Assembly (NCBI RefSeq): GCF_006345805.1
Contig: NC_043007.1
Location: 74,400,001 to 74,464,000, forward strand
Direction of reading: 5' to 3'
DNA length: 64,000 nt
Source: Octopus sinensis
Taxonomy: Eukaryota
The position numbers and the translations under genes are program-made. Each line of letters begins with the position of its first letter. Position 1 is the stretch's first letter. This document shows positions 4,076 to 50,785 of the stretch, piece by piece. A model generated the notes under the pieces. The model searched no databases. It saw only the letters and a program-made list of their open reading frames with translations, and was not told the origin of the DNA.

Positions 4076-5829
4076 GGGGAGCTAATATTCAATTGGGTAT
4101 GCAACAAAATTTTGATATAGAAGAATTGTGCACATCACTAGATCATCAGTTGAGAAGACCTGTTGAACGAAGTGAAATCATTGTTGTGGCTGATGCCAGT
4201 ACTGCCGCCTGACTGGCCCCCTTACTGGTGGCACATAAAAAGCACCATTCGAGTGTGTTCGATGCCAGTGATGTCTGACTGGCTTTGATGCTGATGGCAT
4301 GTAAAAAGCACCATTTGAGCGTGGTTGTTGCCATTTCTGCACCCATTATGCTCTCGGAGTGGTTGGTGTTAGGAAGGCCATGTAGAAACCTTGCCAGATC
4401 AGATTGATGATGATACTTCTTATAATGGGGAAATATTACCTTATTTGGAAACAGATGAGAGTTGGCAACAGGAGGGGCATCTAGTCATAGAAAATCTGCC
4501 TCAAGAAATTCCAGCCAACCTATGCAAGCATGGAAAACTTGAGGTTAAGTTGATGATGATTTGTTTGACAGTTACAATAAATAATAAACGAATAATGTGA
4601 ACAAATAAACTCTTCAAGATGAATTTGTGACTGTTTAATGCAAGCTAGGAATTGGATATCCGGTTTTCTGGGTGAGTCATAAAGTAAGGCAATTTTATTT
4701 GCATTACTTTCCGGCTCACCCTTGTATTAATTGGTCTTTTATAGGAATATCTATCATTTGAGAGTTATGTGCAACACAAATGAATGTGTTGATTCACAGC
4801 TCTACACTCTGCCAAAATAATACAGTAATTACTCTTTTACTCTTTTATTTGCTTCAGTCATGCTGGAGCACCGCCTTTAAATTGATGTCATTGTTCACAT
4901 AGACAAGTATTCAAACATGTTTTTCTTTAGATATTTGACTGGGATAGTTTTGAAATACAACTTTAGATCATTATTTTCTGAAAAGCTCAATAAATTCCAA
5001 TCAATCCATTACTAACCAGGTTATTTTTATCCCAAGGTCAGTCCTGATTGAGAAGACTAATCAGAGACATTCAACTATGATTGTCCCATTTTTATTTATC
5101 CTTTTGCCTCACCAAATCATTTTCATAAGATTCTCCTAAATACCCACAATTGTTGTCAAAGTTTTAGTTAGGCCTTATTTTATATGTTCCAAGTAATATA
5201 AAGCTTTCCTTTCATATGTCCCAAGTGGCTCTAGTGGTTGAAAAAATTGTGAGGAGTGTGTACCACATATGATGCATGGATGGCAGCAAAATGTGTTCAG
5301 TGTATCACACAGGACTGGTAAAGGATTAAGAAACAACATCTCCTGAATTAACCCCGATAAATGTTTCCTTCTTTAATATCACACAGTCTCTTAAGGCAGT
5401 AAGCTGGCAGAATTGTTAGCACTCCAGGTAAAAAGCTTAGCAGTATTTCATCCATCTTTACATTCTGGGTTCACATTTACCTTTCATCCTTTCAAGGCCG
5501 ATAAAATAAGTACCAGCTGAGCACTGGGGTAAGTGCAATCAACTTACCCCCTCTCCCCAAATTGCTGGCCTTGTGCCAAAATTTGAAACCAGTGTCACTG
5601 GGTGTGATTTGAAGGAAATTTGGTTGTTATTTCTAGCAGCTTGCATGTTTACATAGAGGCTTCCTTTTAGTTTGTAAACTCATCAAGATATCAATAAGGT
5701 GTAGTTGAAAAGCTAGTTTCTGTGTGAGAACTGGTTTCTCAAAATATACTAACTTTTCAATCAAGAACTCCAGACTAACAGTGCTGTCTTTCATTTCCTA
5801 TTTATATAATGATTTGATTGTATTGTTTA

Positions 5830-5857
5830 TTAATTATCTTCTCCGTTCTAGGTAAGT
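5830..5857 (+). other. Candidate recursive (zero-length exon) splice site, TAG|GTAAGT
   Basis: TTAAT branch-like motif at 5830-5834 and pyrimidine tract tatcttctccgttc, then TAG (5849-5851) abutting a perfect GTAAGT (5852-5857). There is no other AG in the preceding ~68 nt. Confidence 0.5.
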
Positions 5858-6218
5858 ATTCACCTGAAACATTTTATAAAGCAAAGAGAATTTTGAAATA
5901 TCCATTTACCTCACAACTCTTGAAAAGTTTTGAGTTTCAGTCACATATGTATGTATATTGATTTAACTTCGTTTACTTTTCAAATGAAAAACAACAATTA
6001 GATTGTTTTATATTGATATTGCATCACACAAAAATACATTATTTGAGTAGAAATGTTGTTTTTGGTATTTCACACGGCTGATTAAGTTTCTCAAAACATG
6101 TTTTGACTAGTGTGACATAAATATTTGTCCTTGTGGTAACTAGCTCACTTCAGGTATTCACACATGAGAGATTCACATTGAGATTCAAGACAAAACACAT
6201 TAGCATACAAGTATATAT

Positions 6219-8070
6219 ATCATCATCATGATCATTTAACATCTGTTGTCCATGCTGACATGGGTTGAACGGTTTGACTGGGCTGGCATGCTGGAAGGCT
6301 GTGCCAAGATCCAGTCAGATTTGGCATGGTTTTCTATGGTTGGATGCCCTTCCTAACACCACCCACTCTGAGAGTGTAATGGATGCTTTTACGTGCCATT
6401 TACATGACACCAGTGTCTGCCATGACTGCGATTTTGCTCAGCTTGATGGGTCTTCTCAAGCATGACATAATGCCAAAGGTCTTGGCCATTGCCTCCGTGA
6501 AGCCCAACACTAGAAATGAACTTGGCCACTTTGCCTCCATGAGGTCCAATGCTTGAAAGGAACTCAGCCACCTCGCCTCTGTGAGGCCCATTCAAAAGGA
6601 ACTCAGCCACCTTGCTTCTGTGCTAACACTTCAAAAAAAATCAGCCACTTTGCCTCCATGAGGCCCAATGCTCGAAAGAACTCAGTCATTTTGCCTCCGT
6701 TGGGCCCGATGCTCAAAAGGTACTCAGCCACTTTGCCTCCATGGGGCCCAATATTGAAAGGTTGATTTTACTCTTTATATGCCACCAGCACAGGTGCACT
6801 TGGCTTGATGGGTTCCCATAAGTAGAGCATATTGTCAAAGGTCTCGGTCACTAGTCATTGCCTCAAAGTTCAAAGATCATGCTTCACTGCCTCATCCCAT
6901 GACTTCCTGGGTCTACCTCTACCACAGGTCCCTCACAGTTAAAGATTGGTACTTCTTTACACAACTGACCTTGTCCATATGCATCACATGACCATACCAG
7001 TGCAGTCTCTCTTGCACACCACATCTGGTTCCTCTTATGCCTAACTTTTCTGTCATAGCCCCATGTTTCACTGCCATGCAGCATAGCTGTTTGCACACAG
7101 GCATCAATCTGCTTTTCACTCTTAGAAAGAGGCCCTTTGTTGCTAGCAGGGGTAGGAACTCTCTGAACTTTGCCCAGCCTAATCTTATTCTCACAGCTAT
7201 GCTCTCGGAACAACCATCTCCACTACTAACCTGGTCAGCTAGATACTGGAAGCTATCTACTACCTCTGACTTGCCCCCCCCCCCCGGTAGTTGATGGAAT
7301 CTATTTTCCACACTTGTTCAGCATTTATTATGCCTGTGCATGTTCCACATATAAAAGTTAGTTTTTCTGCTAAACTTCCTTTGATGTTGCTGCATCTTTT
7401 GTGTGTCCAAAGCTTACAAAGGGTGCATCTTATGGAGTTTCTACCTACACCTTTTCTACAGATTGACCAGGACCATCTACCTGAGGGGATTTGTGATTTG
7501 TCTGCCTTCCTACTTACTATGACTTTGGTTTTTGCTAGGTTAACTCTAAGGCCCTTTGATTCTAGACCTTGTTTCCATACCTGGAACTTCTCTTGTGATT
7601 CAGCTATAAGAGCAAGGTCATCAGCATAGAGGATTTCTCAGGGGCAGCCTGTCTTGAATTCCTCCGCTATTGCCTGGAGGACTATGATGAACAAGAAGGG
7701 GCTGAACACCAATCCTCTACTTGTACCTCGAATTCTTTGCTGTACTCATTGCCCACCCTCATCTTACTGGTAGCGTCCTTGTACAAGGTTTTTACAGCTC
7801 TCACCAACCACTCGTCTATCCCTAGTATCTGCATTGACCATTGGATAATGGATCAGAGGACTCTGTCAAAAGCTTTCTCCAAGTCAATAAATGCCAGGTG
7901 CAGAGGTTTATCTTTGGCTAGGTATTTTTCATGCAGTTGCCTTACCAGAAATATAGCATCAGTGGTGCTTCTACCTGGCACAAACTCAAACTGTATCTCA
8001 TCTAGTCTAACTCTTTCCTTGGTTAGTTGGGCTATAACTCTCTCTGCAACTTTCAGCACATGGCCACAGT
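6219..8070 (-). mobile_element. 5'-truncated RTE-clade LINE (RT domain to 3' tail), decayed
   Basis: RT motifs QFEFVPGRSTTDAIF and AFIDLEKAFDRV (ORF 7853-8086). YADD lies at 7617-7628 in SPFLFIIVLQAIAEEFKTGCP*EILYADDLALIAES. Post-RT FQYLADQVSS...LRWYGHVMHM-like region and a (GAT)n tail near 6219-6235. Confidence 0.92.
6484..6770. repeat. Minisatellite, ~41-bp unit x7
   Basis: Units similar to cagccactttgcctccatgaggcccaatgctcgaaaggaact start at about 6485, 6523, 6564, 6604, 6642, 6683 and 6725. Confidence 0.88.
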
Positions 8071-9687
8071 CTAATGACTGAAACAAGTAGAAGAAACCAT
8101 TTACAGTTCACTTCTCTCTACTTGTGTGGATCTTGAACAGTCAATGTCCATATCTCACTTATCATTTGGTTTCTCGTGGTCTTCTCTTCCCCTCCAGAAT
8201 GCCAGTACTTTTCTGTGATTATAAAAGTCCATTCATAACATACATATACACAGAAAAAGTCATACCTGCATGGATTAATCCAAAGTAGTTTATATGATAA
8301 ATATCACTTTACCATATCACTTGTAATAAATCAGTGTTGGCTATACTTTCACCATAACATTTCATATTCGAGTCTGTTTAATGTAAACAACAAGATAGAA
8401 GATGAAAAATGGGCAGTGGGTGCGTATGCCATATTACAGGAGTTCTTGCTCCTTCATCAGCACCCATCCAACCCATTAACCATCTACGAACTCATTGCTT
8501 AAATAGCCATTAAATGTAGCAGTGTAACATTATTGGATACACCAGTTTTATGTGTTAAACACATTCCTAGAAGCTGGTACATAAATATTAATGACTTGTG
8601 GGGACACCATATTTCGTTATGCAACCATAATATACTACAATGTATATTAGCACTTTTATAAGTCAGTACTCTGTTCTACTGTGTTAGTGCTATTAAATCA
8701 CTTGTTAAGGTTAGCTCTACAGGTCTTCTATAGAAATTCTCTATAGAAAATACAGCCAACACTGATTTGTTACATTTCGTATCTGAGTATGCCTAATGTA
8801 AACATCAATGAGATCAGAAAATGAAAAATGGGTAAATGAGCAATATCAATATTCACGTAGCAGCTGCCAGGAATGGCAAGTCATCAATACTTTATCATAT
8901 TTTACGAGGTTGTTCTCTGTTCTCTTTTATCTTTAATTTGTTTTTGTCATTGGACAGCAGCCATTTTTTGGGTAATGCCTCGAAGGATTTAGTTGAGCAA
9001 ATTGACTCCTGTTTTTATATTCTTAAAGCTTGATACTTACTCTATCAATCTCTTTTGCTGAACTTCTAAGTTACAAGGGTGTAAACAAACCAACATGGGT
9101 TGTCTTGCAGTGGTGGGGGTTATAAGCACAAAGACATATGCACATCACACACATACACACACACGCCATCATCATCATTTAATGTCTCTCTTCTATGCTG
9201 GCATGGGTTGTTGGCTTCCATATAGTTTCCATCTAAGGTCACTCAAGGCATTGGCTGTTCTTTGGTTATAGTAGAAGGTGTCATGTAGTGGGACTGAACC
9301 CAAAACCATGTGGTTGTAAAGTTTTTGGGGAGAGGTGGCAAATTAGTTACATCCCACTACTTGACTTGTATTTTATTTTATCCAGCCCCACCCCCACAAA
9401 AAAAACAAATAAAAAACAAAATTAAAGTTGACCTCACTGGAGTTTGAACTCAAAATGTGAAGGACCATATGCAAGACATTTTTAGTTGATGCTTTAATGA
9501 GTCTGTTAATCACCACACTGTATCTTAACACTACAGTGCAGGTGTAACTGTTTGTGGTTAAGAAGTTTGCTTCCCCTACCACATGGTTTCAGGTTCAAAC
9601 CCATTGTGTGTCAGCTTTGGCAAGTGTCTTCTATCTAATCACAGGGCTGACCAAAGCCTTGGGAGTGGATTTGGTAATGAAGAAACC

Positions 9688-18905: not shown

Positions 18906-20629
18906 CTTTGCATCTGTTTGTTTCTTACCCCTTCCCTGCTGCTGCTTGACAACCTATGTTTGGTTTGTGTTTTTATTTCCTTAACTTAGTTCAGCAAAAG
19001 ATACCACACTAGGCTTTTACAAAAGAAAAAAATAATCAGTACTTGGATAGACTCATTCAACTAATGCTCCCTCAAGGCGGTGTCTCAGTACGGCTGCTGT
19101 CTAATAATTGAAACAAGTTTAAAGATAAATGATGAAATAATTTTGTGTACTTTGTTTATTTACTAAAGAATCTTTTTATCTCTTCTATAAAGCCAGATAT
19201 ATTTTTATAACATCTTGTAAACCTTAGGAAGTGAACAGTAAGACTGTTTATACATTAGAGAAAGTAGCAAAGCCAGTTTTTTATTGAATGAATTTGATTC
19301 TAATCAGCTCTTAATCCCCTTCTAAAGAAGTAGATTATTACTATAACAGAGATTGAGTTTCTCCCTTGGTTTCAACTGGAACATCTTGAATATTCTATCT
19401 TTTTACACTGACTGATAAAAATCCTCAGTAGAGTAGTAGTAGTAGTAGTAGTAGTATTTTGAGGAATGACTACGACTACTAGTAGTAGTGGAGCCATTAT
19501 GTATGCTATTGGCATGGTCTCAGCAATTGAAACTGATAAAAAATAAAATAAAAAAATAATGAAATAAAATGTGGAAAAAAAAAAAAAATGAGTCAACACA
19601 CACCGTGGCTTATCATCTCAGACTGCTTTAAATAGCAATACAGCATGCTGTTAGTGTAGTGCTCTGAAAAGTTCACTGCAACAGATAATGAGTAGTTATT
19701 GTTAAAGTATAAGGCGAGTGGCAGAGGGAGGAGATGAAAGACCTTGCTGCTGTTTCAGTTTATTAGTTATGAATCTCAATTAAACATGTTTTTTTTTCTT
19801 CTGATTCATTGCATGTCAAATATGTTTGTTTTTGAGCAAAAGGGTTATTGCATTGTATGTTTTGTTTCTTTTTGTCCCCCTTTCTCCTCCCCTCCTACCC
19901 CTGCGTCTCTCTCTCTCTGTTAGTGAAAGCATATTTTCATCTCAGGCAGTTGTTCCATCATCCCCATTAATGTATAACACAAAATGGAACATGAAAGATG
20001 AGTGTACGCCTAATTATATTCAATTAATTATGTTTATACACAGGCATTGCTATTTAAAAACATCTACAAATCTAGTTTCATTCAGTTAGGAATATTGGAA
20101 CAGGAATAGGTTCCTGTTGTTTTCAGTAACCTTTGACTTAGAATCAGTCCCATGTTTTTATCATCATCATCATCATCATGAAAGTGCTTAGCTGCATTTT
20201 GTCCGTCCTTATGATCTGAGTTCAAATTCCACCCAGGTTGACTTTACCTTTCATCCTTTCAGGGTCGATGAAACAAGTACCAGTTGAGCCCTGGGATCAA
20301 TATAACCGACCACCCCTCCATCCCCCAAATTTCAGGCCTTGTACCTACAGTAGAAAAGATTATTATTATTACTATCGAGGTTGTCTTTGCTTTTCATCCT
20401 TTCAGGGTCAATAAATTAAGTACCAGTGAAACACTGGGGTTGATGTAATCAACTAGTCCCCTCCACCCCAAATTTCAGGCCTTGTGCCTTTAGTAGAAAA
20501 GATTATTATTATGGTGATGAGTTTAGATTCTACCAAGGTTGACTTTGCTTCTCATCATCTTCAGGATTGATAAAATAAGTACCAGTCAAGCCCCCTAGGC
20601 CCCCTAGGAAAAATTGCAGGCTTTGCATA

Positions 20630-21740
20630 TCATCATCACCATCATCAGTATTGTTTAATGCCTGGTCTCCATACTGGCACAGGTTGGATGGTTTGACATG
20701 GAGCTGGCTAGCAGGGAACTGTCTGGACTCCAACTGTCTGTTGCAGTATGGTTTCTACCGCTAGATACTCTTCCTAATGCCCACCACTTAATTGTGTGTG
20801 CTGGGTGCTTTTTACGGTGCATTTATGCATTTACGCAGTGTCACAGGTGCATTTACACAACACTGGCATGGGTGCGTTAATGCAGCACTGGCACCTGAAA
20901 GGAAAAGCTTCTATGTGTGGAAGACGACAATTTTACTTAGCTTGACATGTCTTATCAAGTACAGCAAATCATCACATCTTCTGGTCCCTTTTCATTACCT
21001 CAGTGAGGCCCAGTGTCCAAAGATCCTTTCTCCCTGGGTCTACTCCTTCCACAGGTACCCTCCACAACTAGACAACTAGGGCTTGGTACTTCTTTATGCA
21101 GCTGTCCTCATCCATGCGCATCACATGACGAAACCAGCACACAAAATCTGATGCCCCTTATGCCCAGTTTTCTTCTTAAATCATTTTACATTCTGTCATG
21201 CTTGCATGCTGACATTAGTCATCCAGTGGAGCATGCTAGCTTCATTTCTTTCAAGCCTTTGCAAGTCCTCTGTAGTCAAAACCTATGCTTCACTGCCATG
21301 TAAGATAGCTCTATGTACACAAGCATCATACAATCTGCCTTTTACTCTAAGGGAGAGGCCCTTAGTTACCAACAAAGGTAAAAGCTCTCTGGACTTTGCC
21401 CAGCCTGTTTGTATCCTAGCAATTACACTTTCAGAACTCCTTCCCCTACTGCTAACTTGGTCCCCTAGGTAACAGAAGTTGTCTGCTACTTCTAATGATC
21501 CACCTGAGGAATTGAGGGAGCATATTGTCTGCCTATTTTTAGTGCTTGTTGTACCTGCACATTTGCCATACACAAAGACTATATTCTCCATTAACCTTTT
21601 GATACCACTGCACCTCTTTTGTGTTCAGACATCACCCGTCCAGCTGAGCATGTCAGCTTCATTTCTTTCAAGCCTTTGCAAGTCCTCTGTGATCAAAGCT
21701 CATATTTCACTGTCATGTAACATACCTGTATGTACACAGG
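20630..21740 (-). mobile_element. RTE LINE 3' fragment(s)
   Basis: ORF 21283-21591 (LEVADNFCYLGDQVSS...LRVKGRLYDACVHRAILHGSE) is homologous to the 6.9-7.3 kb copy. The same 3' UTR and (GAT)n tail are at ~20630. Confidence 0.85.
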
Positions 21741-22094
21741 AGCACCTATAGTAGAAAGGGTTATTATTAAGGTGGTGAGCTGGCAGAATCATTACCATAT
21801 CAGGGTTGACTTTTTCCTTTCATCCTTTTGGAGTCAATGAAGTGGGTACTAGTGAGCACTGGGAAGGAAGGGTCGATGTAATCAATTTCTTATCTCCACT
21901 CCAAATTGCTGGCCTTGTGCCCAAATTTAAAATTATTATCATTGTTATTTAAGGCCGTGAGCTGATAGAATTGTTACCGCACCAAGCAAAATGCTTAGTG
22001 CCATTTCATCTGTCATCACGTTCAAATTCCACCAAGGTCGACTTTACATTCAGGCCTTGTGCCTATAGTAGAAAGAATTATTATTATTATTGGA

Positions 22095-23445: not shown

Positions 23446-26053
23446 TTTTTATTATTATTTTTATCATTGTCATCATCATTTCTGAGATATTTTGTGAGGA
23501 ACCTGTTCTTTTACTTTTTAAATTACCATCAAACAAAATATTCAAAAAATTACTTCAAAAATAGAAGTTATTTGTTCTTTTATCATAAAAAAAAATTACC
23601 AAATCACTATTTTATGTTTACTAGGTGCTTTACTTGTACCGTCAGCACTAGTGAGGTTACCAGGTTACTTGTGAGACAGAAGAAGGAAAAAGAAAAAGCC
23701 TCTTTGACTAACTAGTCGTGGTGGTGGGTATTTGGGAGACGGGTGTGGTTTTATGCCAGGTGTTGAAAGGTTAAGATATGATAGAGAGACAAATAGAGGT
23801 GCCACGCAGCTACCCCACATTTTATATGGTTGAGTAGGGGTAACTGTGAAGATAAGATGGTAGTGTTGGGGTGCCAGAGCAAATTGTCAAGGTACAAGAA
23901 GGTGAGTATAAAAGAGGATACAGACAGTGGATTTGTGGTGATGGTGGTGGTGGGGTTCCATAAGATTATGAGAGGAGAGAGATAGATAGTTGGAGATAGT
24001 TGGGGTTGGGGGTGGGGGGTGGCGAGTGATGAACAAAAGTGGAGCTGCAGTTGATGGGAAATAGCAGAATGAGGTGGGGATAAGGTGGGAGAGACAAGGA
24101 AGTAGGGGAATGATGTGCAAGATATAGGAGTGGTGAGGTGGGAGATGTACAGGTACATAGAGGTAGCTATAGTGGGTGGAGTGTGTTGGAAGATAGTTAA
24201 TCTTGTATGTAATGGTTTGGGTTGTATATTTGCAAACTCTGACCAAAATGTAGCCTTAAATTGGAGATTTACTATATAAATGTGAAAAAGATGATTTATT
24301 TAATTGCATATGCTTCTGTCTAAGCAGGCTATGGGGTTTGATTACCTCCTAATAATTATCAAAGCAGCAGTGAAAGTCAATCATTATTTAATTCTCGGAA
24401 AGAAACAAGCTGTATCATATTTCCTCTGTTTCATGAATAATTTACCTGTTGTCAGCCTACAATATTAGATCTAACTGTTCCAGATGACCTCTCCTTGAAT
24501 GACGACAACCTTGTACGTTGAGACGAGATGTACATGGAGGAGAGACACAAAATCATTTAGTCTTGATCAGCTCCTGATTTAACCAATATACTAGCAAGTC
24601 TTTGGCATATTTCTCCTCAGTATGGAATGATTTATTTACTTCAGTTGCTGAATTATTGATTCCACCCCCCACTCTTTCACCAGGCATAATGCCAATTGGC
24701 TATAAGCAAAGGGGGGTTATAAGTTGATTGAATTGATCCTAGAGTTATTTTGGTGTTCATTTTATTGTTCTCAGTTATAAAAGACTAAGTTAACTCAGGT
24801 GTGGTTTGAATTGTAAATGTAGTATGATGAATTGAAGTATGGTGTCTGACAGACATTGAATGAGTTTTTTTCTCACTTCCAAACATGTTCAATCATACTC
24901 AAGATAAAACTGACTGACAAAATTCTTCATCTTAATTAATTAGAAGTGCACTAAGCAATGCTGAATGAAATATAATTATGTACAATCATTATTGTAATAT
25001 GTTCACCCACATTCAGATATGGAAAGACAATACAATATGTTGTACAAGTTGTCTCAAGAGAAGTTCTCCTTAGAGATAATAGTCATCCATGGCCTAATGG
25101 TATGTTTACACTCATATTGTCTGTAAGGAGAATTTCTTCTCTTGAGACAACTTGTGCAGTATACAAACATGTTAGATGTGACTGTACATTACTATATTCA
25201 TCATCAAAGTATTTAACTAGCTGTCGTTTTGTGTTTTCTTTCTTTTTTTGTTTGTTTTTTCCTTTCTTGGTTGCATTTACACACCAGGCGAAATGCTTAA
25301 CGGTATTTCATCTGCCACTACGTTCTGAGTTCAAATTCCGCCGAAGTCAACTTTGCCTTTCATCCTTTTGGGGTCGATTAAATAAGTACCAGTTACGCAC
25401 TGGGGTCCATATAATCAACTTAATCCGTTTGTCTATCCTTGTTTGTCCTCTCTGTGTTTAGCCCCTTGTGGGTAGTAAAGAAATAGGTATTTTGTCTGTC
25501 TTTACATTCTGCGATCAAATTTCGCCGAGGTCGATAAATTAAGTACCAGTTGCGTACTGGGGTCGATCTAATCAACTGGCCCCCTCCCCCAAAATTTGTG
25601 CCTAGAGTAGAAAAAAATTAGTAGACTTTGTTCTTATGAACAACATATTTTTACAGGAAGAAAAACAAAAAAAAACATTAAAAATATAAAAGATAAAATT
25701 ATTGGGAACCCCTACCCTATAACTATCTCACCAAGGGAACAAAGAAAAAAAAAATGGAGGTAGATTAACTAGCAGAAGGTGGTGGGGAATCAAAACAACA
25801 AACATCATGCTGTAGTTCCCTTTCTGTGTAGTCAAAAATTTCTTCAGTAGTTCTTGTTCTTATGAACACCTCCTACATGTCTTTTTTTTCCTCCATAGTC
25901 AGCAAACTGTATCTTGCTTCCCAGATCTGAGAACAGAATACTTTTCTCTGTCATCTGTCTGTAGAAAATTACATCTTTTTAAACTACCTTGGCCCCACAT
26001 CCTTTGCAACATTTTTTTGGCAATTATCCATAACGTAAGTATTTTATTTCACA

Positions 26054-26929: not shown

Positions 26930-28136
26930 CATGCGTCTTTCAGTTTCCATCTACCAGATTTACACACAAGGCTTTGATCAGGGCTATACTAGAAGTTAGT
27001 TACCCAAAGTGCCATGCAGTGGGACTGAATCCTCAACCACATGGTTGGGAAGCCAGCTTAACCACATAGCCATGCCTATGCCTCTTTATGCCTTGTTACA
27101 TAAATTATTGAAAGAAGTATTCTTAGCATTGCATTTTAAATTGATATCTATAATCTTTCCCTCTGCTAAAATTTTACACATATCAGAATATTATTTGAGA
27201 ATTACTGTATTTCAAGGCATTGATGCACTTTTTTTTTCCTAAAAAAAAATGTCTAAAAATCACCCCAGGTCCTATATATATGAAGTTGGGTCTCCTCCAA
27301 GCTAATTTTGTCCTGACACTCGCTACAGTAGGCTAATTTTAGTCCAGACAGTTCTTTTCTATCTAGTTTGATTCCATAACAATATTTGCTTAAAATCTTA
27401 TTAATGTTTAAATAATGTTTTGTAATATTCTGCTTGATTGCTTTAAATATTACATGCTTTAATGTACTAAAAACTATTTTTCCTCAATGTGTGCTGTTGA
27501 AAATGAGATGTGTCTAATCTACTTGTGCCTCACTTTTATGCCATCAAATATAGTAGGAACCAACAATGACAGACCTAAATAATCTAAAATGTCAGTACAT
27601 ATATATTATTACCAACTTAATGCCAATATACTAGTAATTATTTTATCTTTTATCTTTTGCTTTTTTCAGTCAGACTATGGCCATTCTGGGGCACTGCCTT
27701 GAAGAAATTGTTTTTTAATCGAACGATTTGACCCCAGTACTCATTTTTGTAAGCCTGGTGCTTATTCTGTTGGTCGAACCGCTAAGTTACAGGGATGTAA
27801 ACATGTCAACACTGGTTGTCAAGTAGTGGTAGTGGTGGTGGGAGGGACACACACACAATGGCTTCTTTCAGTTTCTGTTTACCGAATACACTCACAAGGC
27901 TTTGGTCTGCATGAGGCTATAGTTGAAAAACTTGCCCAAGGTGCCATGTGGTTGGGAAGCCAGTTTCTTAACACACAGCTGCACTTGTGCCTATTTGTGT
28001 AGTTATTTTCTGAAAGTATTCTGTAAATCAAAATATTTTCTATTGTTTATTGCAGGTAAACACTGAGTCTGCTATATAAACCACCATAGATTTATTGGCC
28101 ATCTGCTTAAAGGACCTTTCTACAAAATAAGGAACC

Positions 28137-28148
28137 ATGGCAAGTCAG
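28137..28148 (+). CDS. CCDC9: CCDC9-like gene, first coding exon (exon 28056-28148; CDS encodes MASQ)
   Basis: Acceptor tattgtttattgcag ends at 28055 and donor CAG|gtaatg starts at 28149. The ATG sits in an ACCATGG context with an in-frame TAA 6 nt upstream (28128-28130). It joins in phase 0 to the exon at 41296. Confidence 0.7.
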
Positions 28149-28482: not shown

Positions 28483-29771
28483 TCAGGTCAGGTCATCCCA
28501 TAAGTTCTGTCCGAATTTTGAATAAAGAAAACAAGTGATCAAATGTTATATTTAATTCAAATTTAATCATCAATGTACTTTCCTTGATCATCTATTACTT
28601 CCTTCCATCTATTTACAAGCTTTTTAACCCCATCAATGTAAAACTCTTTTGGTTTCAAAGCGAAGAACTCTGAAATGTCGGTTTTTACCTCCTCTTGGCC
28701 TGAGAAAGTTATGTCCCCCAAATGATTCTGTAAACTATGAAACAAATGGTAGTCTGAAGGAGCAAGGCTAGGAGAATAAGGTGGATGAGGAATTTTTTAT
28801 AACCTAGCTCTTCGATCTTCTGTGATGTGATCTTTGCAGTGTGGGATCGCACATTGTCCTGATGAAACATAACTCCTTTTTGATTCACTAAAGCGGGTCA
28901 CTTTTTCTTCAAAGCTTGGTTCAAACGCTCTAATTGCTGACAGCAGACTTGAGCATTGATTGCTGCATTAGATGGTAACAATTCAAAGTGAATTACTCCT
29001 TTGCAATCCCACCAGATAGAGAGAGCCTTTTTTCCATGAAGTTCTTTTCTCGATTGTGGTTGAGCTTTTTTCCTTTCACCAAGCCACTGTCTACAACATT
29101 TAACATTTCGATAGAAGATCCATTTTTCATCACTAGTCACAAGTCTATCCAAAAAGGGTGAAATGAGTTCATGAGAATGGAGAGAAGAGCAGATGTCAAC
29201 TCAGGATTTGCAGTTGCTTTCAGACAATTCATGAGGCACCCATTTTCCAAGTTTAGGAACCTTTTGAAGTTGTTGAAGATGACGATGAACAGTTGTATGG
29301 TTTGATCCAAGCTTTATTGGCAATTCTTCAACTGATGAGGCCGGATTTTCTTCAAGCAATGCCTCAAGGAGCTTGTCATCAAACTCAACTGGATGTCCTA
29401 TTTGATCTTCATCTTCAAGGCTGAAATCTCCACTTCTGAATTTTGCAAACCATCTTCTGCAAGTTCTTTCATTCAAGCATTCTTTCCCATAAGCTGAGTG
29501 TATGTTTCGAGTTCCTTTGGCTGCAGAGTTTCCTTTTTTGTACTCATAAAGCATTATGTGCCTCAAATGCTCTTTGGACACTTCCATGTTAGAAAAGGTT
29601 TTAATCAAAGAAATTTTAATTCTATTATTCTATAAAATAATATTTAATTAGTTTAAATGTACACAAATGCATAAAAATAATTTTTAATTCCATTAGACAT
29701 TCTAAAATACTATTAAATTTCATTCAATTTTGAAAAAGGTAAAATCGGACAGAACTTATAGGATGACCTGA
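28483..29771 (-). mobile_element. Near-full-length decayed mariner transposon (D,D34D; mellifera-subfamily-like)
   Basis: TIRs tcaggtcatcc(c/t)ataagttctgtccga at both ends, TA target sites (28481-82, 29772-73), 1289 bp. Transposase pieces in ORFs 29201-29608, 28898-29152 and 28563-28745 carry WVPHEL, TSDEKW, HQDN and YSPSLAPSDY. There are two in-frame TGA stops and one frameshift. Confidence 0.95.
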
Positions 29772-30164: not shown

Positions 30165-30750
30165 CATCATCATCACCATTTAATGTTTGCTTTCCATGCT
30201 GGCATGGGTTGAACAGTTAGACATGTAGCTGGCTAGCAAATCTGTCCAGGCTCCAATTGTCTGTTGTGGCATGGTTTCTACGGCTGGATGCCCTTCCTGA
30301 TGCCATCCACTTAACAGAGTGTACTGGGCGCTTTTCATGTGTCACTGGCACAGGCGTATTTATGTAGTACCAGTATGGATGCATTAACGCAGCACCAGCA
30401 TGGGTGCTTTTTACGCGACACTGGCACTTGAAAGGACAAATCTCTGTGTGTAGAAGACAGCAATTTTACTTAACTTGACACAACTTATCAAGTACAGCAA
30501 ATTGCCGCATCTACCGGTCCCTTGTCATTCCTTCAGTGAGGCCCAGTGTCTGAAGATCCTTTCTCACTACTTTGTCCCATGTCTTCTCAGGTCTACCTCT
30601 TCCATAGGTACCTTCTATAATTAGAGCTTGGCACTTCTTTCTGCAGCTGCCCTCATCCACACGCATCACATGACCAAACCAGCATGGTCTTCCCTCTTGC
30701 ACATAACAATTGATGCCTCTTCTACCGAGTTTACCTCTTAAATCATTTAA
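30165..30750 (-). mobile_element. RTE LINE 3' end
   Basis: ORF 30511-30702 WFGHVMRVDEGSCRKKCQAL...GRGRPEKTWDKVVRKDL, followed by the family 3' UTR and tail. Confidence 0.85.
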
Positions 30751-30759
30751 AAACTGGGT

Positions 30760-31376
30760 ATAAGAGGCACCTGTAGATTATTTCTCATTAATTAATCTGG
30801 AGTTTGGAACATAAATTAACCCTTCTGTTGCCATGTTTCTGTTGAGATATTCTGTGTTTACTTCAATCAACTTTAAATATAATGAAGAGTTTAGTAAAAC
30901 AACTTTGTTATTATTAAGCTAGTCTTAGGAACATAAAATATGGACTAAATTTGGGTGAAAGATTTTAATTCTGAACGTCTGAAAGCAAAACATTTGTTGC
31001 AGGCAGTCTCAGGATGGATGATATAAAAAGGGTTAACATGGAATTTTGATGGAAGGTTTTACTTTAGATCACTTTAAAACAAGAAGTTTGTACCATGGAA
31101 TTATAACCTTGGCTTTGGGTGAATTGGTATCAAAAGCATTAAACCCCTTAACCCTTTCGTTACTGTATTTATTTTGAGATGCTCTGTATTTCTTTCAATT
31201 ACTTTAAATATGACAAAGAATTAAGTAAAATAACTTAGTTTACCATTAAACAAGTGTTAGGAGCATAAATTGCGACTAAGGTTTGGTGGAAGGTTTTAAT
31301 TCAAAACTTATGAAAACAAGACGTTTGTACTCAGAGCCGGAGCCAGTTTCAGCCGGGTTGGTAACAAAAGGGTTAA
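30760..31376. mobile_element. Cluster of three piggyBac-like P1 MITEs, one nested in another
   Basis: TTAA-CCC...GGG-TTAA units at 30816-31036 and 31148-31376. The flanks of the first are two halves of a further P1 copy. Confidence 0.8.
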
Positions 31377-32700: not shown

Positions 32701-33533
32701 TTACCACATTTGTTTGCAAGTAGGTAACCCTCTGTTTTAAATTTCCGGGTTCATAGGATTATGCTCAAGGTGACTTCGTCATTCATATGTGCCATCCTTG
32801 CTACATTCACCCATCTTTTTTTAAAACATTCAAATAACTATGATAGTGACTGTTGAAATGACAGGACTGGGTGAATCATGCTGCTAAGCCCTGATCTTGA
32901 GATCACTCCCTTTTTTAAATTTGAAATAAACATTGTCTATCAGATATTCATTGTCATTATCATCATCAACCCCTGGACATTAGGATTTGTAGGGCAGATT
33001 ACCTGGTTTCCTTGGTGTGTAAGTGACTGAGGTCACGACATTCCCCCTAAATAGGAAGCCATTTCATTGCAGTGTTATTCATTTACAGTTGAATGAACTG
33101 GAGCAATGTGATATGAAGTGTTTTTGCTCAAGAACACAACTATCACCCTGACTGAGAATTGAAACTTCAATCTTGAAATTGCGAGTGTAACAACTGAACC
33201 ACTTGGCCATGTGCATTGTAGATGTATAACCAATTTTTTGCCCGTAAATTTAAACAACAAAATCTTATGTGGACCCTGGTTGTGAACTGCTGGTGTAGAG
33301 AAAGCATAAAAGCAGTTGATGTAGCCCTGAAACTGCTTGCTATTCAGTCAGCCAAACTGGGAGTAATGTTTATCAGGTCAAATTTTGTCATTTGATAAAG
33401 TTGTGCCCCTTAATGAACCTTATTCAGTTTTGTGATAATGTTTTATTGATTGCTGTGAGAGCCAGGGTGTTCATCTATATCAACATATATTTATCACAGG
33501 CCTTCTTCATTGTTCTCTTGAGCCTCTCCTCTG

Positions 33534-34282
33534 TTGTTCACCACCATGCATTTTGGGAGAAAAAACCCTGCATCCAAATACTCCCTCCACAACACTGATA
33601 TCAAGAAATCCTCTTGCGAGCGTGACCTAGGCATCACTGTCAGCAGTGATTTGCGTTGGACAAAGCATATCTCTAAAATTGTCAAGAAGGCCGAGGGTGT
33701 CTTGGCATCACTCAGCAAGACTTTTGTTAGCCGCTCTCCAGCCATCTATTTAAAACTGTATACAGCTATGGTACGACCACACTTGGAATTCGCATCATCA
33801 GTTTGGAATCCCTATCTTGCTCAGAACATTGACCTCCTGGAATCTGTCCAGAGACGTGCAACCAAACGCATACCCTCCATCAGACACCTACCATATTCTG
33901 AGCGCCTTGTTTCCCTGGGCATGGATTCACTGAAGCTCCGGCGTCTAGCGACGGACTTGGTAAACACCCACAAGGTTATCAACCACCTCACCAACAACAA
34001 CACTGAACACCTTTTTGATCTCCATGTGTCTAACACACGTGGACATGCCTACAAAGTCAGAAAACAGCACAGCTCCCATGACTTTCGGAAACATTTTTTC
34101 ACGCTCAGGGTTGCTGAAGCGTGGAATAAACTGCCTGCATCAGTTGTTGACTGCCATGACACTGCATCCTTTAAGGCCCTCATGCTTCCCGAAATCCGTC
34201 GAAACTACACCTGATTATATATACACTTTAGATGAGTTGTAGTGCACCTGAGCACTGTACACAATTATTATTATTATTATAT
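33534..34282 (+). mobile_element. CR1-clade LINE 3' fragment, young
   Basis: Open 226-aa frame with ERDLGI, LYTAMVRPHLEFASSVWNP, LESVQRRATK, ERL..L...L..RR, TRGH and RKHFFTLRVAEAWNKLP. It ends at a natural stop, then a short UTR and (ATT)n tail. More GC- and CpG-rich than the flanks. Confidence 0.93.
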
Positions 34283-39010: not shown

Positions 39011-39549
39011 CCTGAATATGCACTACTGCAATTGAGGTGCATCTAATATGCCTGTGTATCTTTTATGCCTTCAAATACAGTAATTTTATAAAAATAAAGA
39101 GAAATAATCTAAGCAAAGGATCTAAATTGATGAGAAAAATGCAAGTTTCAAATATTATTTATTGGACTCATTAATTCAAATATAGTAGGGTCTCACACAT
39201 ATTGAAATGAGATTATTCAACCATTTAGTATATAAAAACTCCCTTACAAGTCTTTAGCTCTTCAGCATTTAAAGCAGCCCTGAATATGCACTACTGCTAC
39301 TGAGGTGCATCTAATATGCCTGTGTATCTTTTATGCCTTCAAATACGGTAATTTTATAAAAATAAAAGAGAAATAATCTAAGCAAAGGATCTAAATTGAT
39401 GAGGAAAATGCAAGTTTCAAATATTATTTATTGGACTCATTAATTCAAATATAGTAGGGTCACACACATATTGAATTGAGATTATTCAACCATTTAGTAT
39501 ATAAAAACTCCCTTACAAGTCTTTAGCTCTTCAGCATTTAAACCAGCCA
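39011..39549. repeat. Recent tandem duplication, ~270-bp unit x2
   Basis: 39011-39279 and 39280-39549 differ by only a handful of substitutions and indels, with gcc microhomology at the junction. Confidence 0.93.
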
Positions 39550-50186: not shown

Positions 50187-50339
50187 GTGAATATATTTTT
50201 GTTTGTTTTTATGAAAAAAATATGCAATAGGAATGTATCCTAGTCAATGACAGTTATTAAATACTTTTGTCATTGACAAAATTGCTGGCAAAACACAAAT
50301 GAATATTTTAATTTCTTCTTTTATTCTGTCCTGCTCTTT

Positions 50340-50785
50340 AGCTGTGAGACTGGGACATTGTTCTGGGCCTTTAGAAGCCGCCTGAACTTCTTTGGTATCA
50401 AGGTGCTTCGCAGAATTATGGGTTACCTTTGGTCAGATTTCATATCCATCCAACAACTCTACTCAGAAACTAGGATGCGTTCAGTTACTTGTATGATGCT
50501 GGAGTGCCTGCTCAGACTGTTTGGCCATGTTGCTCTATTTTCCGAGTTAGACCCTGCTTACAATGTCCTCTTCACTGAGGATTTAGCTGGGTTGATATCT
50601 GAAGTGGGTCAACTACATACCACATGGTCACAGTTGGTGAAACGGTATCTTGCGAAGATGGGAACTGACTAGGACTCTGCTTAATGTGTCACCTGGGAGA
50701 ACCATTACAAGACAAGAAAGAGACTTGGGAATATACCAACAAATGCTGAATGCAGCGACATGTTGCAATGGCACAAGCCCCCGCC
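50340..50785 (+). mobile_element. RTE-like LINE 3' end, different family
   Basis: ORF 50358-50672 LRRIMGYLWSDFIS...LRLFGHVA is the post-RT pattern LRRIxGxxWxD...LRxFGHV. Confidence 0.7.

Follow-up and report, generated by a model that had tools for sequence, protein, structure and literature searches.

On the + strand of the 64-kb stretch of Octopus sinensis DNA analyzed here (in the following, the window), a T-rich, acceptor-like sequence ends in TAG at position 5851 and is followed at once by a perfect GTAAGT. A sequence-only reading had taken this junction for a candidate recursive splice site in a long 5' intron, which raises the question of whether it takes part in stepwise intron removal or arose by chance. 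The evidence favors the latter, at a probability of roughly 0.65: the junction is best read as an unselected pseudo-splice site, i.e., an acceptor-like stretch that abuts a perfect donor in AT-rich, T-skewed non-coding DNA, be it intronic or intergenic. We infer that it has no dedicated function. The parts of the site and the nearest downstream donor are as follows (window coordinates; a slash marks a splice junction).

5782 to 5849, + strand: acceptor-like AG-exclusion zone, 68 nt with no AG, 55.9% T and 70.6% pyrimidine
5815 to 5819, + strand: branch-like TTGAT (yUnAy), with A5818 located 33 nt upstream of the junction
5830 to 5834, + strand: branch-like TTAAT, the motif named in the sequence-only reading, with A5833 located 18 nt upstream of the junction
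5837 to 5849, + strand: polypyrimidine core TCTTCTCCGTTCT, 12 of 13 positions (-15 to -3) being pyrimidines, with G at 5845
5849 to 5851, + strand: acceptor-like TAG, with the AG at 5850 to 5851
5852 to 5859, + strand: consensus 5' splice site GTAAGTAT, GTAAGT at 5852 to 5857 and then AT
5949 to 5956, + strand: weak donor-like tat/GTATGTAT, PWM score of -0.8, 8 of 11 matches to the U1-complement consensus

When the sequence was read directly, the AG-free T-rich stretch, the TTAAT, the TAG and the zero-spaced GTAAGT described earlier were found to be base-exact. The + strand runs ...ccagactaacAG (5780–5781) and then tgctgtctttcatttcctatttatataatgatttgattgtattgtttattaattatcttctccgttcTAG/GTAAGTATtcacc..., with 5780–5781 being the last AG upstream of the junction. 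The polypyrimidine core carries TT at -6/-5 (5846–5847) and T at -3, and the sequence 5' of it is A/T-rich. On the donor side, GTAAGT is extended by AT, and AGGTAAGTAT therefore forms a full 10-nt U1 complement, which we take to be a perfect, contiguous Watson-Crick match to the 5' end of U1 snRNA. In a crude PWM with no octopus training set behind it, the acceptor scored 4.13 and ranked 70 of 3564 AG dinucleotides on the + strand (top 2%); about 70 unrelated AGs in the window match or beat it by this crude measure. Under similarly crude PWM scoring, the donor ranked 6 of 3790 GT dinucleotides, and the junction came top of the 422 AG/GT sites in the window. As to the candidate branch points, A5818 lies within the range of -36 to -21 reported for fly ratchet points, while A5833 lies just outside it (10.1101/006163). 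TTGAT is weak evidence, since such a motif is common in AT-rich DNA, and TTAAT is a putative branch motif. A perfect yeast-type branch consensus, TACTAAC, was also noticed at 5747–5753 (+), just 5' of the AG-free zone, as was CTAAC at 5775–5779 (+), directly 5' of the last AG; both are potential distant branch points should the acceptor be in use.

The motif invites comparison with ratchet points of the fly, of which about 197 have been described (Duff et al., 10.1101/006163). These consist of AG/GT with GTAAGT-like donors, carry TT at -5/-6 in 99.5% of cases vs. 44% of ordinary acceptors, have a pyrimidine tract more prominent than that of ordinary introns, and are strongly conserved (10.1101/006163). 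The octopus site shares the motif features of these zero-nucleotide-exon ratchet points (Ubx, kuz, osp, fz): AG/GT is juxtaposed with a strong intronic donor (TAG/GTAAGTAT at 5849–5859), and TT occupies -5/-6 (T5847 and T5846). It departs from them in its only moderate tract and in the T at -3. Moreover, the fly sites come with demonstrated introns of >11 kb, conservation, very strong T-tracts and a cryptic downstream exon, whereas the host intron of the octopus site is a putative one and its candidate downstream donor is weak. Fly host introns measure 11–133 kb and are divided into segments of 2.6–64 kb, and only 6% of fly introns of >11 kb are recursive (10.1101/006163).

In the RS-exon sites of long neuronal genes in human and mouse (PMC8797253, PMC6224609), AGGTAAGT is enriched and the upstream 20 nt are pyrimidine-rich, as they are here. 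Vertebrate sites prefer the first introns of long genes, a placement that the sequence-only reading had assumed for the octopus site. They are found in introns of >51 kb and genes of >294 kb, are highly conserved and make use of exon definition, while the octopus site so far offers a sequence motif. In mouse brain, <0.06% of transcribed long introns are recursive, all of them >51 kb, and 84 junction-supported AG/GT candidates comprised 46 unannotated exons vs. 19 recursive sites (PMC8797253). For a lungfish with a 40-Gb genome, no more recursion than in human is reported.

Two further classes of sites resemble the junction. The 'RS-like' cryptic exons that begin with GT (PMC8797253) likewise have an AG/GT acceptor and possibly form a short exon with a donor of its own, for which the donor at 5949 would be the counterpart here. 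However, mouse RS-like exons have a strong AGGTAAGT at the downstream donor, whereas the arrangement in the octopus is the opposite, strong at AG/GT and weak at the downstream donor. Pseudo- and cryptic splice sites of long introns (U1-binding or telescripting sites, decoy exons) combine consensus-grade signals with the lack of a stable product and a frequency expected from composition. Such sites and the octopus site may both bind U1 or U2AF if transcribed, but the latter surpasses a typical pseudo-site in its exact zero-spacing juxtaposition and its long AG-free zone. No paper linking recursive splicing to octopus was present in the literature searched, consistent with the earlier statement that the process is undescribed in cephalopods; thus, there is no prior for the mechanism in this lineage.

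The expectation under chance depended strongly on how much of the site was required. AGGTAAGT occurs once in 128 kb, i.e., on both strands of the window, and 0.6–1.1 occurrences per strand are expected from Markov models of orders 0–4. For YAGGTAAGT on both strands, one occurrence was seen vs. 1.05 expected, and 67 of 100 dinucleotide shuffles contained at least one. Thus, the 8-mer alone is no more than chance, as one copy was seen and about one was expected from shuffles and Markov models alike. The composite was tested on 64-kb strands simulated 400 times under an order-3 Markov model: AGGTAAGT preceded by an acceptor no worse than the observed one was found 0.022 times per strand, and the figure was 0.037 when every intronic donor at least as good as the observed one was admitted along with such an acceptor. 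When at least 30 nt without AG were also required, the simulations gave 0.005 per 64-kb strand. An analytic estimate of the composite yielded 0.02–0.035 per strand, and no second site passing both thresholds exists on either strand of the window. Per strand-window, a site this good is thus a 1-in-25 to 1-in-50 event, which is unusual for one window. If 0.02–0.04 such sites per 64-kb strand are scaled to the genome, whose size we assume to be about 2.7 Gb, roughly 800–1700 equally good chance sites are expected per strand. What is shown is the sequence of the site, the frequency expected under chance and the lack of a second copy in the window.

The acceptor half was also assessed by itself. 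A pyrimidine at -3 with a tract score at least as high as that observed was found at 3.1% of + strand positions vs. 1.7% on the minus strand. With at least 40 nt free of AG in addition, the share was 1.0% of + strand positions, and with an equal tract score and at least 68 nt free of AG it was 0.2%. The pattern YYYYYNYYYYAGGTAAGT, which was defined post hoc, was matched in 0 of 100 shuffles; in a relaxed form (R at +3, one mismatch), this post hoc pattern was matched in 28 of 100. When donors were scored jointly with acceptors over the full 9-mer PWM, 0.27–0.31 chance sites were obtained per strand-window. This figure is too high, as both matrices reward C at -3 and weak intronic donors such as GTGGGT pass; it was replaced by the intronic-donor test (0.037). 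The top plain donor of the window, AAG/GTGAGTAT at 23899–23909 (+), has a purine-rich 5' side and no acceptor signal, which indicates that consensus donors occur here without exon context.

A recursive site needs a host intron, and the sequence-only reading had placed the next exon 22 kb downstream. ORF, Pfam and protein-database searches of the window revealed neither a host gene nor an upstream exon nor the boundary of an intron. Specifically, stop-to-stop and acceptor/donor-bounded ORF scans of both strands yielded no coding-looking ORFs outside transposon remnants, and Pfam recognized no family in composite non-TE ORFs from 28–64 kb of the + strand and from the whole minus strand. As a positive control, Pfam readily detected transposon fragments of 70–140 aa in the window. 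A search of 5.8 billion proteins with + strand ORFs from 1–28 kb and 28–64 kb, among them both ORFs that span the site, returned no match at E <= 0.001. A 22-mer across the junction had 0 matches in metagenome contigs, as expected for a collection without cephalopods.

The 'next exon' of the sequence-only reading is almost certainly 28056–28148 (+), which shows the exon-like pattern ttattgcag/GTAAACACTGAG...GGAACCATGGCAAGTCAG/GTAATG. Its acceptor is the second-best AG/GT of the window, so that this segment, too, starts with a donor-like sequence, GTAAAC. With a summed splice score of 8.7, it is only about 20th among the acceptor/donor pairs of the + strand, and only four of its codons are open. 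TATATAAA is located at 28073, with CCATCT 28 nt downstream, and the segment could equally be read as a TATA-driven first exon with no intron upstream.

The sequence-only reading had also placed the site outside any recognizable transposable element, and this was upheld by self-BLAST, within the reach of a self-comparison of the window: the interval 5592–6211 has no second copy there. It is flanked by SINE-like copies at 5393–5591 and 6212–6398. This SINE-like family is abundant, being present at about 20 other places in the window with up to 130 pairwise matches per interval, and repeats detected by self-comparison make up 35% of the window. A LINE fragment on the minus strand (6884–8107), 1 kb downstream of the site, contains RVT_1 and a PHD-like finger (Pfam), and a related LINE copy lies at about 20600–21800. 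A Mos1/mariner-type transposase remnant was identified at 28566–29629 (-) in three ORF pieces (HTH_48, E = 9e-23; Transposase_1, E = 3e-20). An Rfam search of the whole window gave nothing at gathering score.

Base composition offers a hint about transcription. In unique DNA, the T>A skew of the + strand amounts to -0.07 and ranges from -0.03 to -0.12 across all eight 8-kb bins; owing to this skew, pyrimidine tracts are commoner on the + strand. CpG depletion is strong and uniform (o/e of 0.27 overall, 0.21 in unique DNA and 0.33 in repeats) and is accompanied by a TG/CA excess of 1.27–1.34. In Octopus bimaculoides, methylation is concentrated on expressed gene bodies and low in intergenic DNA (PMC9476566). 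As figures for the window by itself, the depletion of CpG and the skew toward T weakly fit a germline-methylated gene body transcribed from the + strand. None of these features is at odds with an animal genome that is rich in repeats and AT and poor in CpG.

In the fly, recursive splicing depends on a cryptic exon with a donor at its downstream end (PMC8605326), and the same exon-definition logic applies in vertebrates (PMC8797253). Among the GTs within 280 nt downstream of the junction, the donor at 5949 is the only candidate to close such an exon, which would span 5852–5948 (97 nt), and all other GT dinucleotides in this range score below it. No PWM-positive donor is present within these 280 nt; the first ones are found at 6136 and 6154 (284–302 nt away). 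Upstream of the site, the acceptor ttatttctagcag/ at 5638–5639 (PWM score of 2.4) would give a 212-nt exon, 5640–5851. The summed score of this candidate exon is about 8.8 and equals that of 28056–28148 (8.7). A second upstream acceptor candidate, at 5495–5496, is located inside a SINE copy. There is no promoter-like rise in CpG or GC near the site (CpG o/e of 0.1–0.3). TATATAA at 5804–5810 was considered as the promoter of a first exon ending at 5851 and rejected, as such an exon would comprise only about 12–17 nt, which seems implausible.

How do these observations bear on the possible origins of the junction? In a true recursive site, an upstream exon would be joined to the AG at 5851, and the regenerated donor (exon end plus GTAAGT) would then remove the remaining 22 kb or more, giving two steps in all. 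We consider this unlikely, although the signature is the expected one, with AG/GTAAGT(AT), TT at -5/-6, 12 of 13 pyrimidines, a 68-nt AG-free zone and yUnAy motifs at 18 and 33 nt; the T at -3 detracts from it. The composite expectation of just 0.02–0.04 per strand-window, the location in unique DNA, and a strand skew and CpG depletion that fit a + strand gene body all argue for recursion, but the host gene, upstream exon and intron that it presupposes were not found by the Pfam and protein-database searches. Similarly, the distance of about 22 kb to the exon-like 28056 is within the fly segment range of 2.6–64 kb, but this 'next exon' is indistinct from about 20 equally good exon-like pairs. 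A cryptic exon of 97 nt could end at the weak donor at 5949, but a strong downstream donor, as exon definition requires (PMC8605326), is lacking. In addition, recursion is rare in mammals (PMC8797253), is reported to be no commoner in the giant-genome lungfish, and had no link to octopus in the literature searched. An unselected pseudo-splice site, the preferred reading, agrees with the chance frequency of the 8-mer, and, with many equally good chance sites genome-wide, scans will meet them. It also agrees with the T>A skew, which raises the frequency of pyrimidine tracts on the + strand, with the outcome of the searches above, which beyond transposon remnants turned up neither an exon nor a gene nor a protein match on either strand, with the lack of a PWM-positive donor for exon definition within 280 nt downstream, and with the low base rates of recursion (<0.06% in mouse, PMC8797253; 6% in fly, 10.1101/006163). 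Less expected of a pseudo-site is that it should be the best of 422 AG/GT junctions and the sole site on either strand to pass both thresholds, with TT at -5/-6, a long stretch free of AG and branch-like motifs suitably spaced from the junction. Its location in unique, non-repeat DNA also speaks against a pseudo-site, as do the uniform depletion of CpG and the T>A skew found in each of the eight bins, both of which fit a + strand gene body. Much depends on how dense recursion is in cephalopods. If it were as dense as in the fly, 64 kb of long intron would contain more true sites than chance ones and the site would probably be real; if cephalopods were vertebrate-like, chance sites would outnumber real ones several-fold. 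Should the + strand be transcribed, GTAAGTAT would be expected to be a strong pairing partner for U1 snRNP, and the pyrimidine tract could be bound by U2AF. In that case, the pseudo-site could be used now and then as a cryptic splice site, or could offer U1 a landing site and so help to suppress premature polyadenylation; it would not be a dedicated, conserved step of intron removal.

The junction may instead bound an unannotated ordinary non-coding exon, used in some mRNAs or in a lncRNA, which either ends at 5851 (e.g., 5640–5851) or, as a cassette or RS-like exon, begins at 5852 (e.g., 5852–5948). This, too, is an improbable explanation, on a par with recursion. The donor is among the six best of the window and, with the upstream acceptor (PWM score of 2.4), delimits a 212-nt exon that scores as well as 28056–28148 (about 8.8), but upstream acceptors are weak and the final 70 nt before the donor resemble an acceptor tract and not an exon. 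Precedent exists in mouse brain, where 46 of 84 AG/GT candidates turned out to be unannotated exons (PMC8797253). On the other hand, neither an ORF nor homology pointing to coding was detected by the Pfam and protein-database searches, a promoter-like CpG or GC rise is absent nearby, TATATAA at 5804–5810 is probably too close to the donor for a plausible first exon, and an exon starting at 5852 would have to use the weak downstream donor. Less probable than either is an origin from an old transposon or a small-RNA pseudogene, for example a U1 snRNA pseudogene on the minus strand, reading ATACTTACCT, or the 3' tail of the LINE at 6884–8107 (-). The minus strand opens like U1 snRNA, ATACTTACCT being what we take to be the exact U1 start for 10 nt, but the likeness ends there. 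A U1 gene or pseudogene was rejected since Rfam, at a permissive E <= 10, gave only noise matches in the site region, with no U1 or other snRNA at the site and no covariance-model match beyond the 10-nt end. The LINE fragment is only 1 kb away and on the minus strand, but a SINE copy separates it from 5592–6211, and this interval has no match elsewhere in the window, not even to the second LINE copy at 20.6–21.8 kb. Membership in a repeat was dismissed on the same self-BLAST evidence, which covers elements that are multi-copy within the window as opposed to old single-copy ones.

If, against these odds, the junction were a working zero-nucleotide-exon recursive site in a long cephalopod intron, it would be, to our knowledge and judging by the literature searched, the first case of recursive splicing reported in a mollusc or in any lophotrochozoan. 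Recursive splicing would then extend beyond insects and vertebrates to cephalopods, in which genes contain very long introns and show heavy expression in a large nervous system. This would point to a third animal lineage with a large genome and a large brain in which introns came to be, or continued to be, removed stepwise, and the locus would be a concrete one for testing convergent evolution in the handling of long introns. The present value of the site is methodological: a perfect AG/GTAAGT with a decent tract is to be expected about once per 25–50 strand-windows of such composition. Because of this chance rate, calling recursive sites by motif alone across about 2.7 Gb of genome would mostly return chance matches unless conservation, sense/antisense enrichment or RNA evidence were brought in.

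Several minor features of the window were recorded besides. ORFs resembling the C-terminal part of reverse transcriptase were recognized by eye at 33522–34211 (+), 50277–50669 (+) and 30514–30777 (-), with no match in Pfam. A 42-nt tandem repeat of 5.9 copies with 71% matches occupies 6514–6750 and adjoins the 3' side of the LINE. Furthermore, a 269-nt tandem duplication was observed at 39011–39548; its two copies are 97% identical, and it is therefore probably recent.
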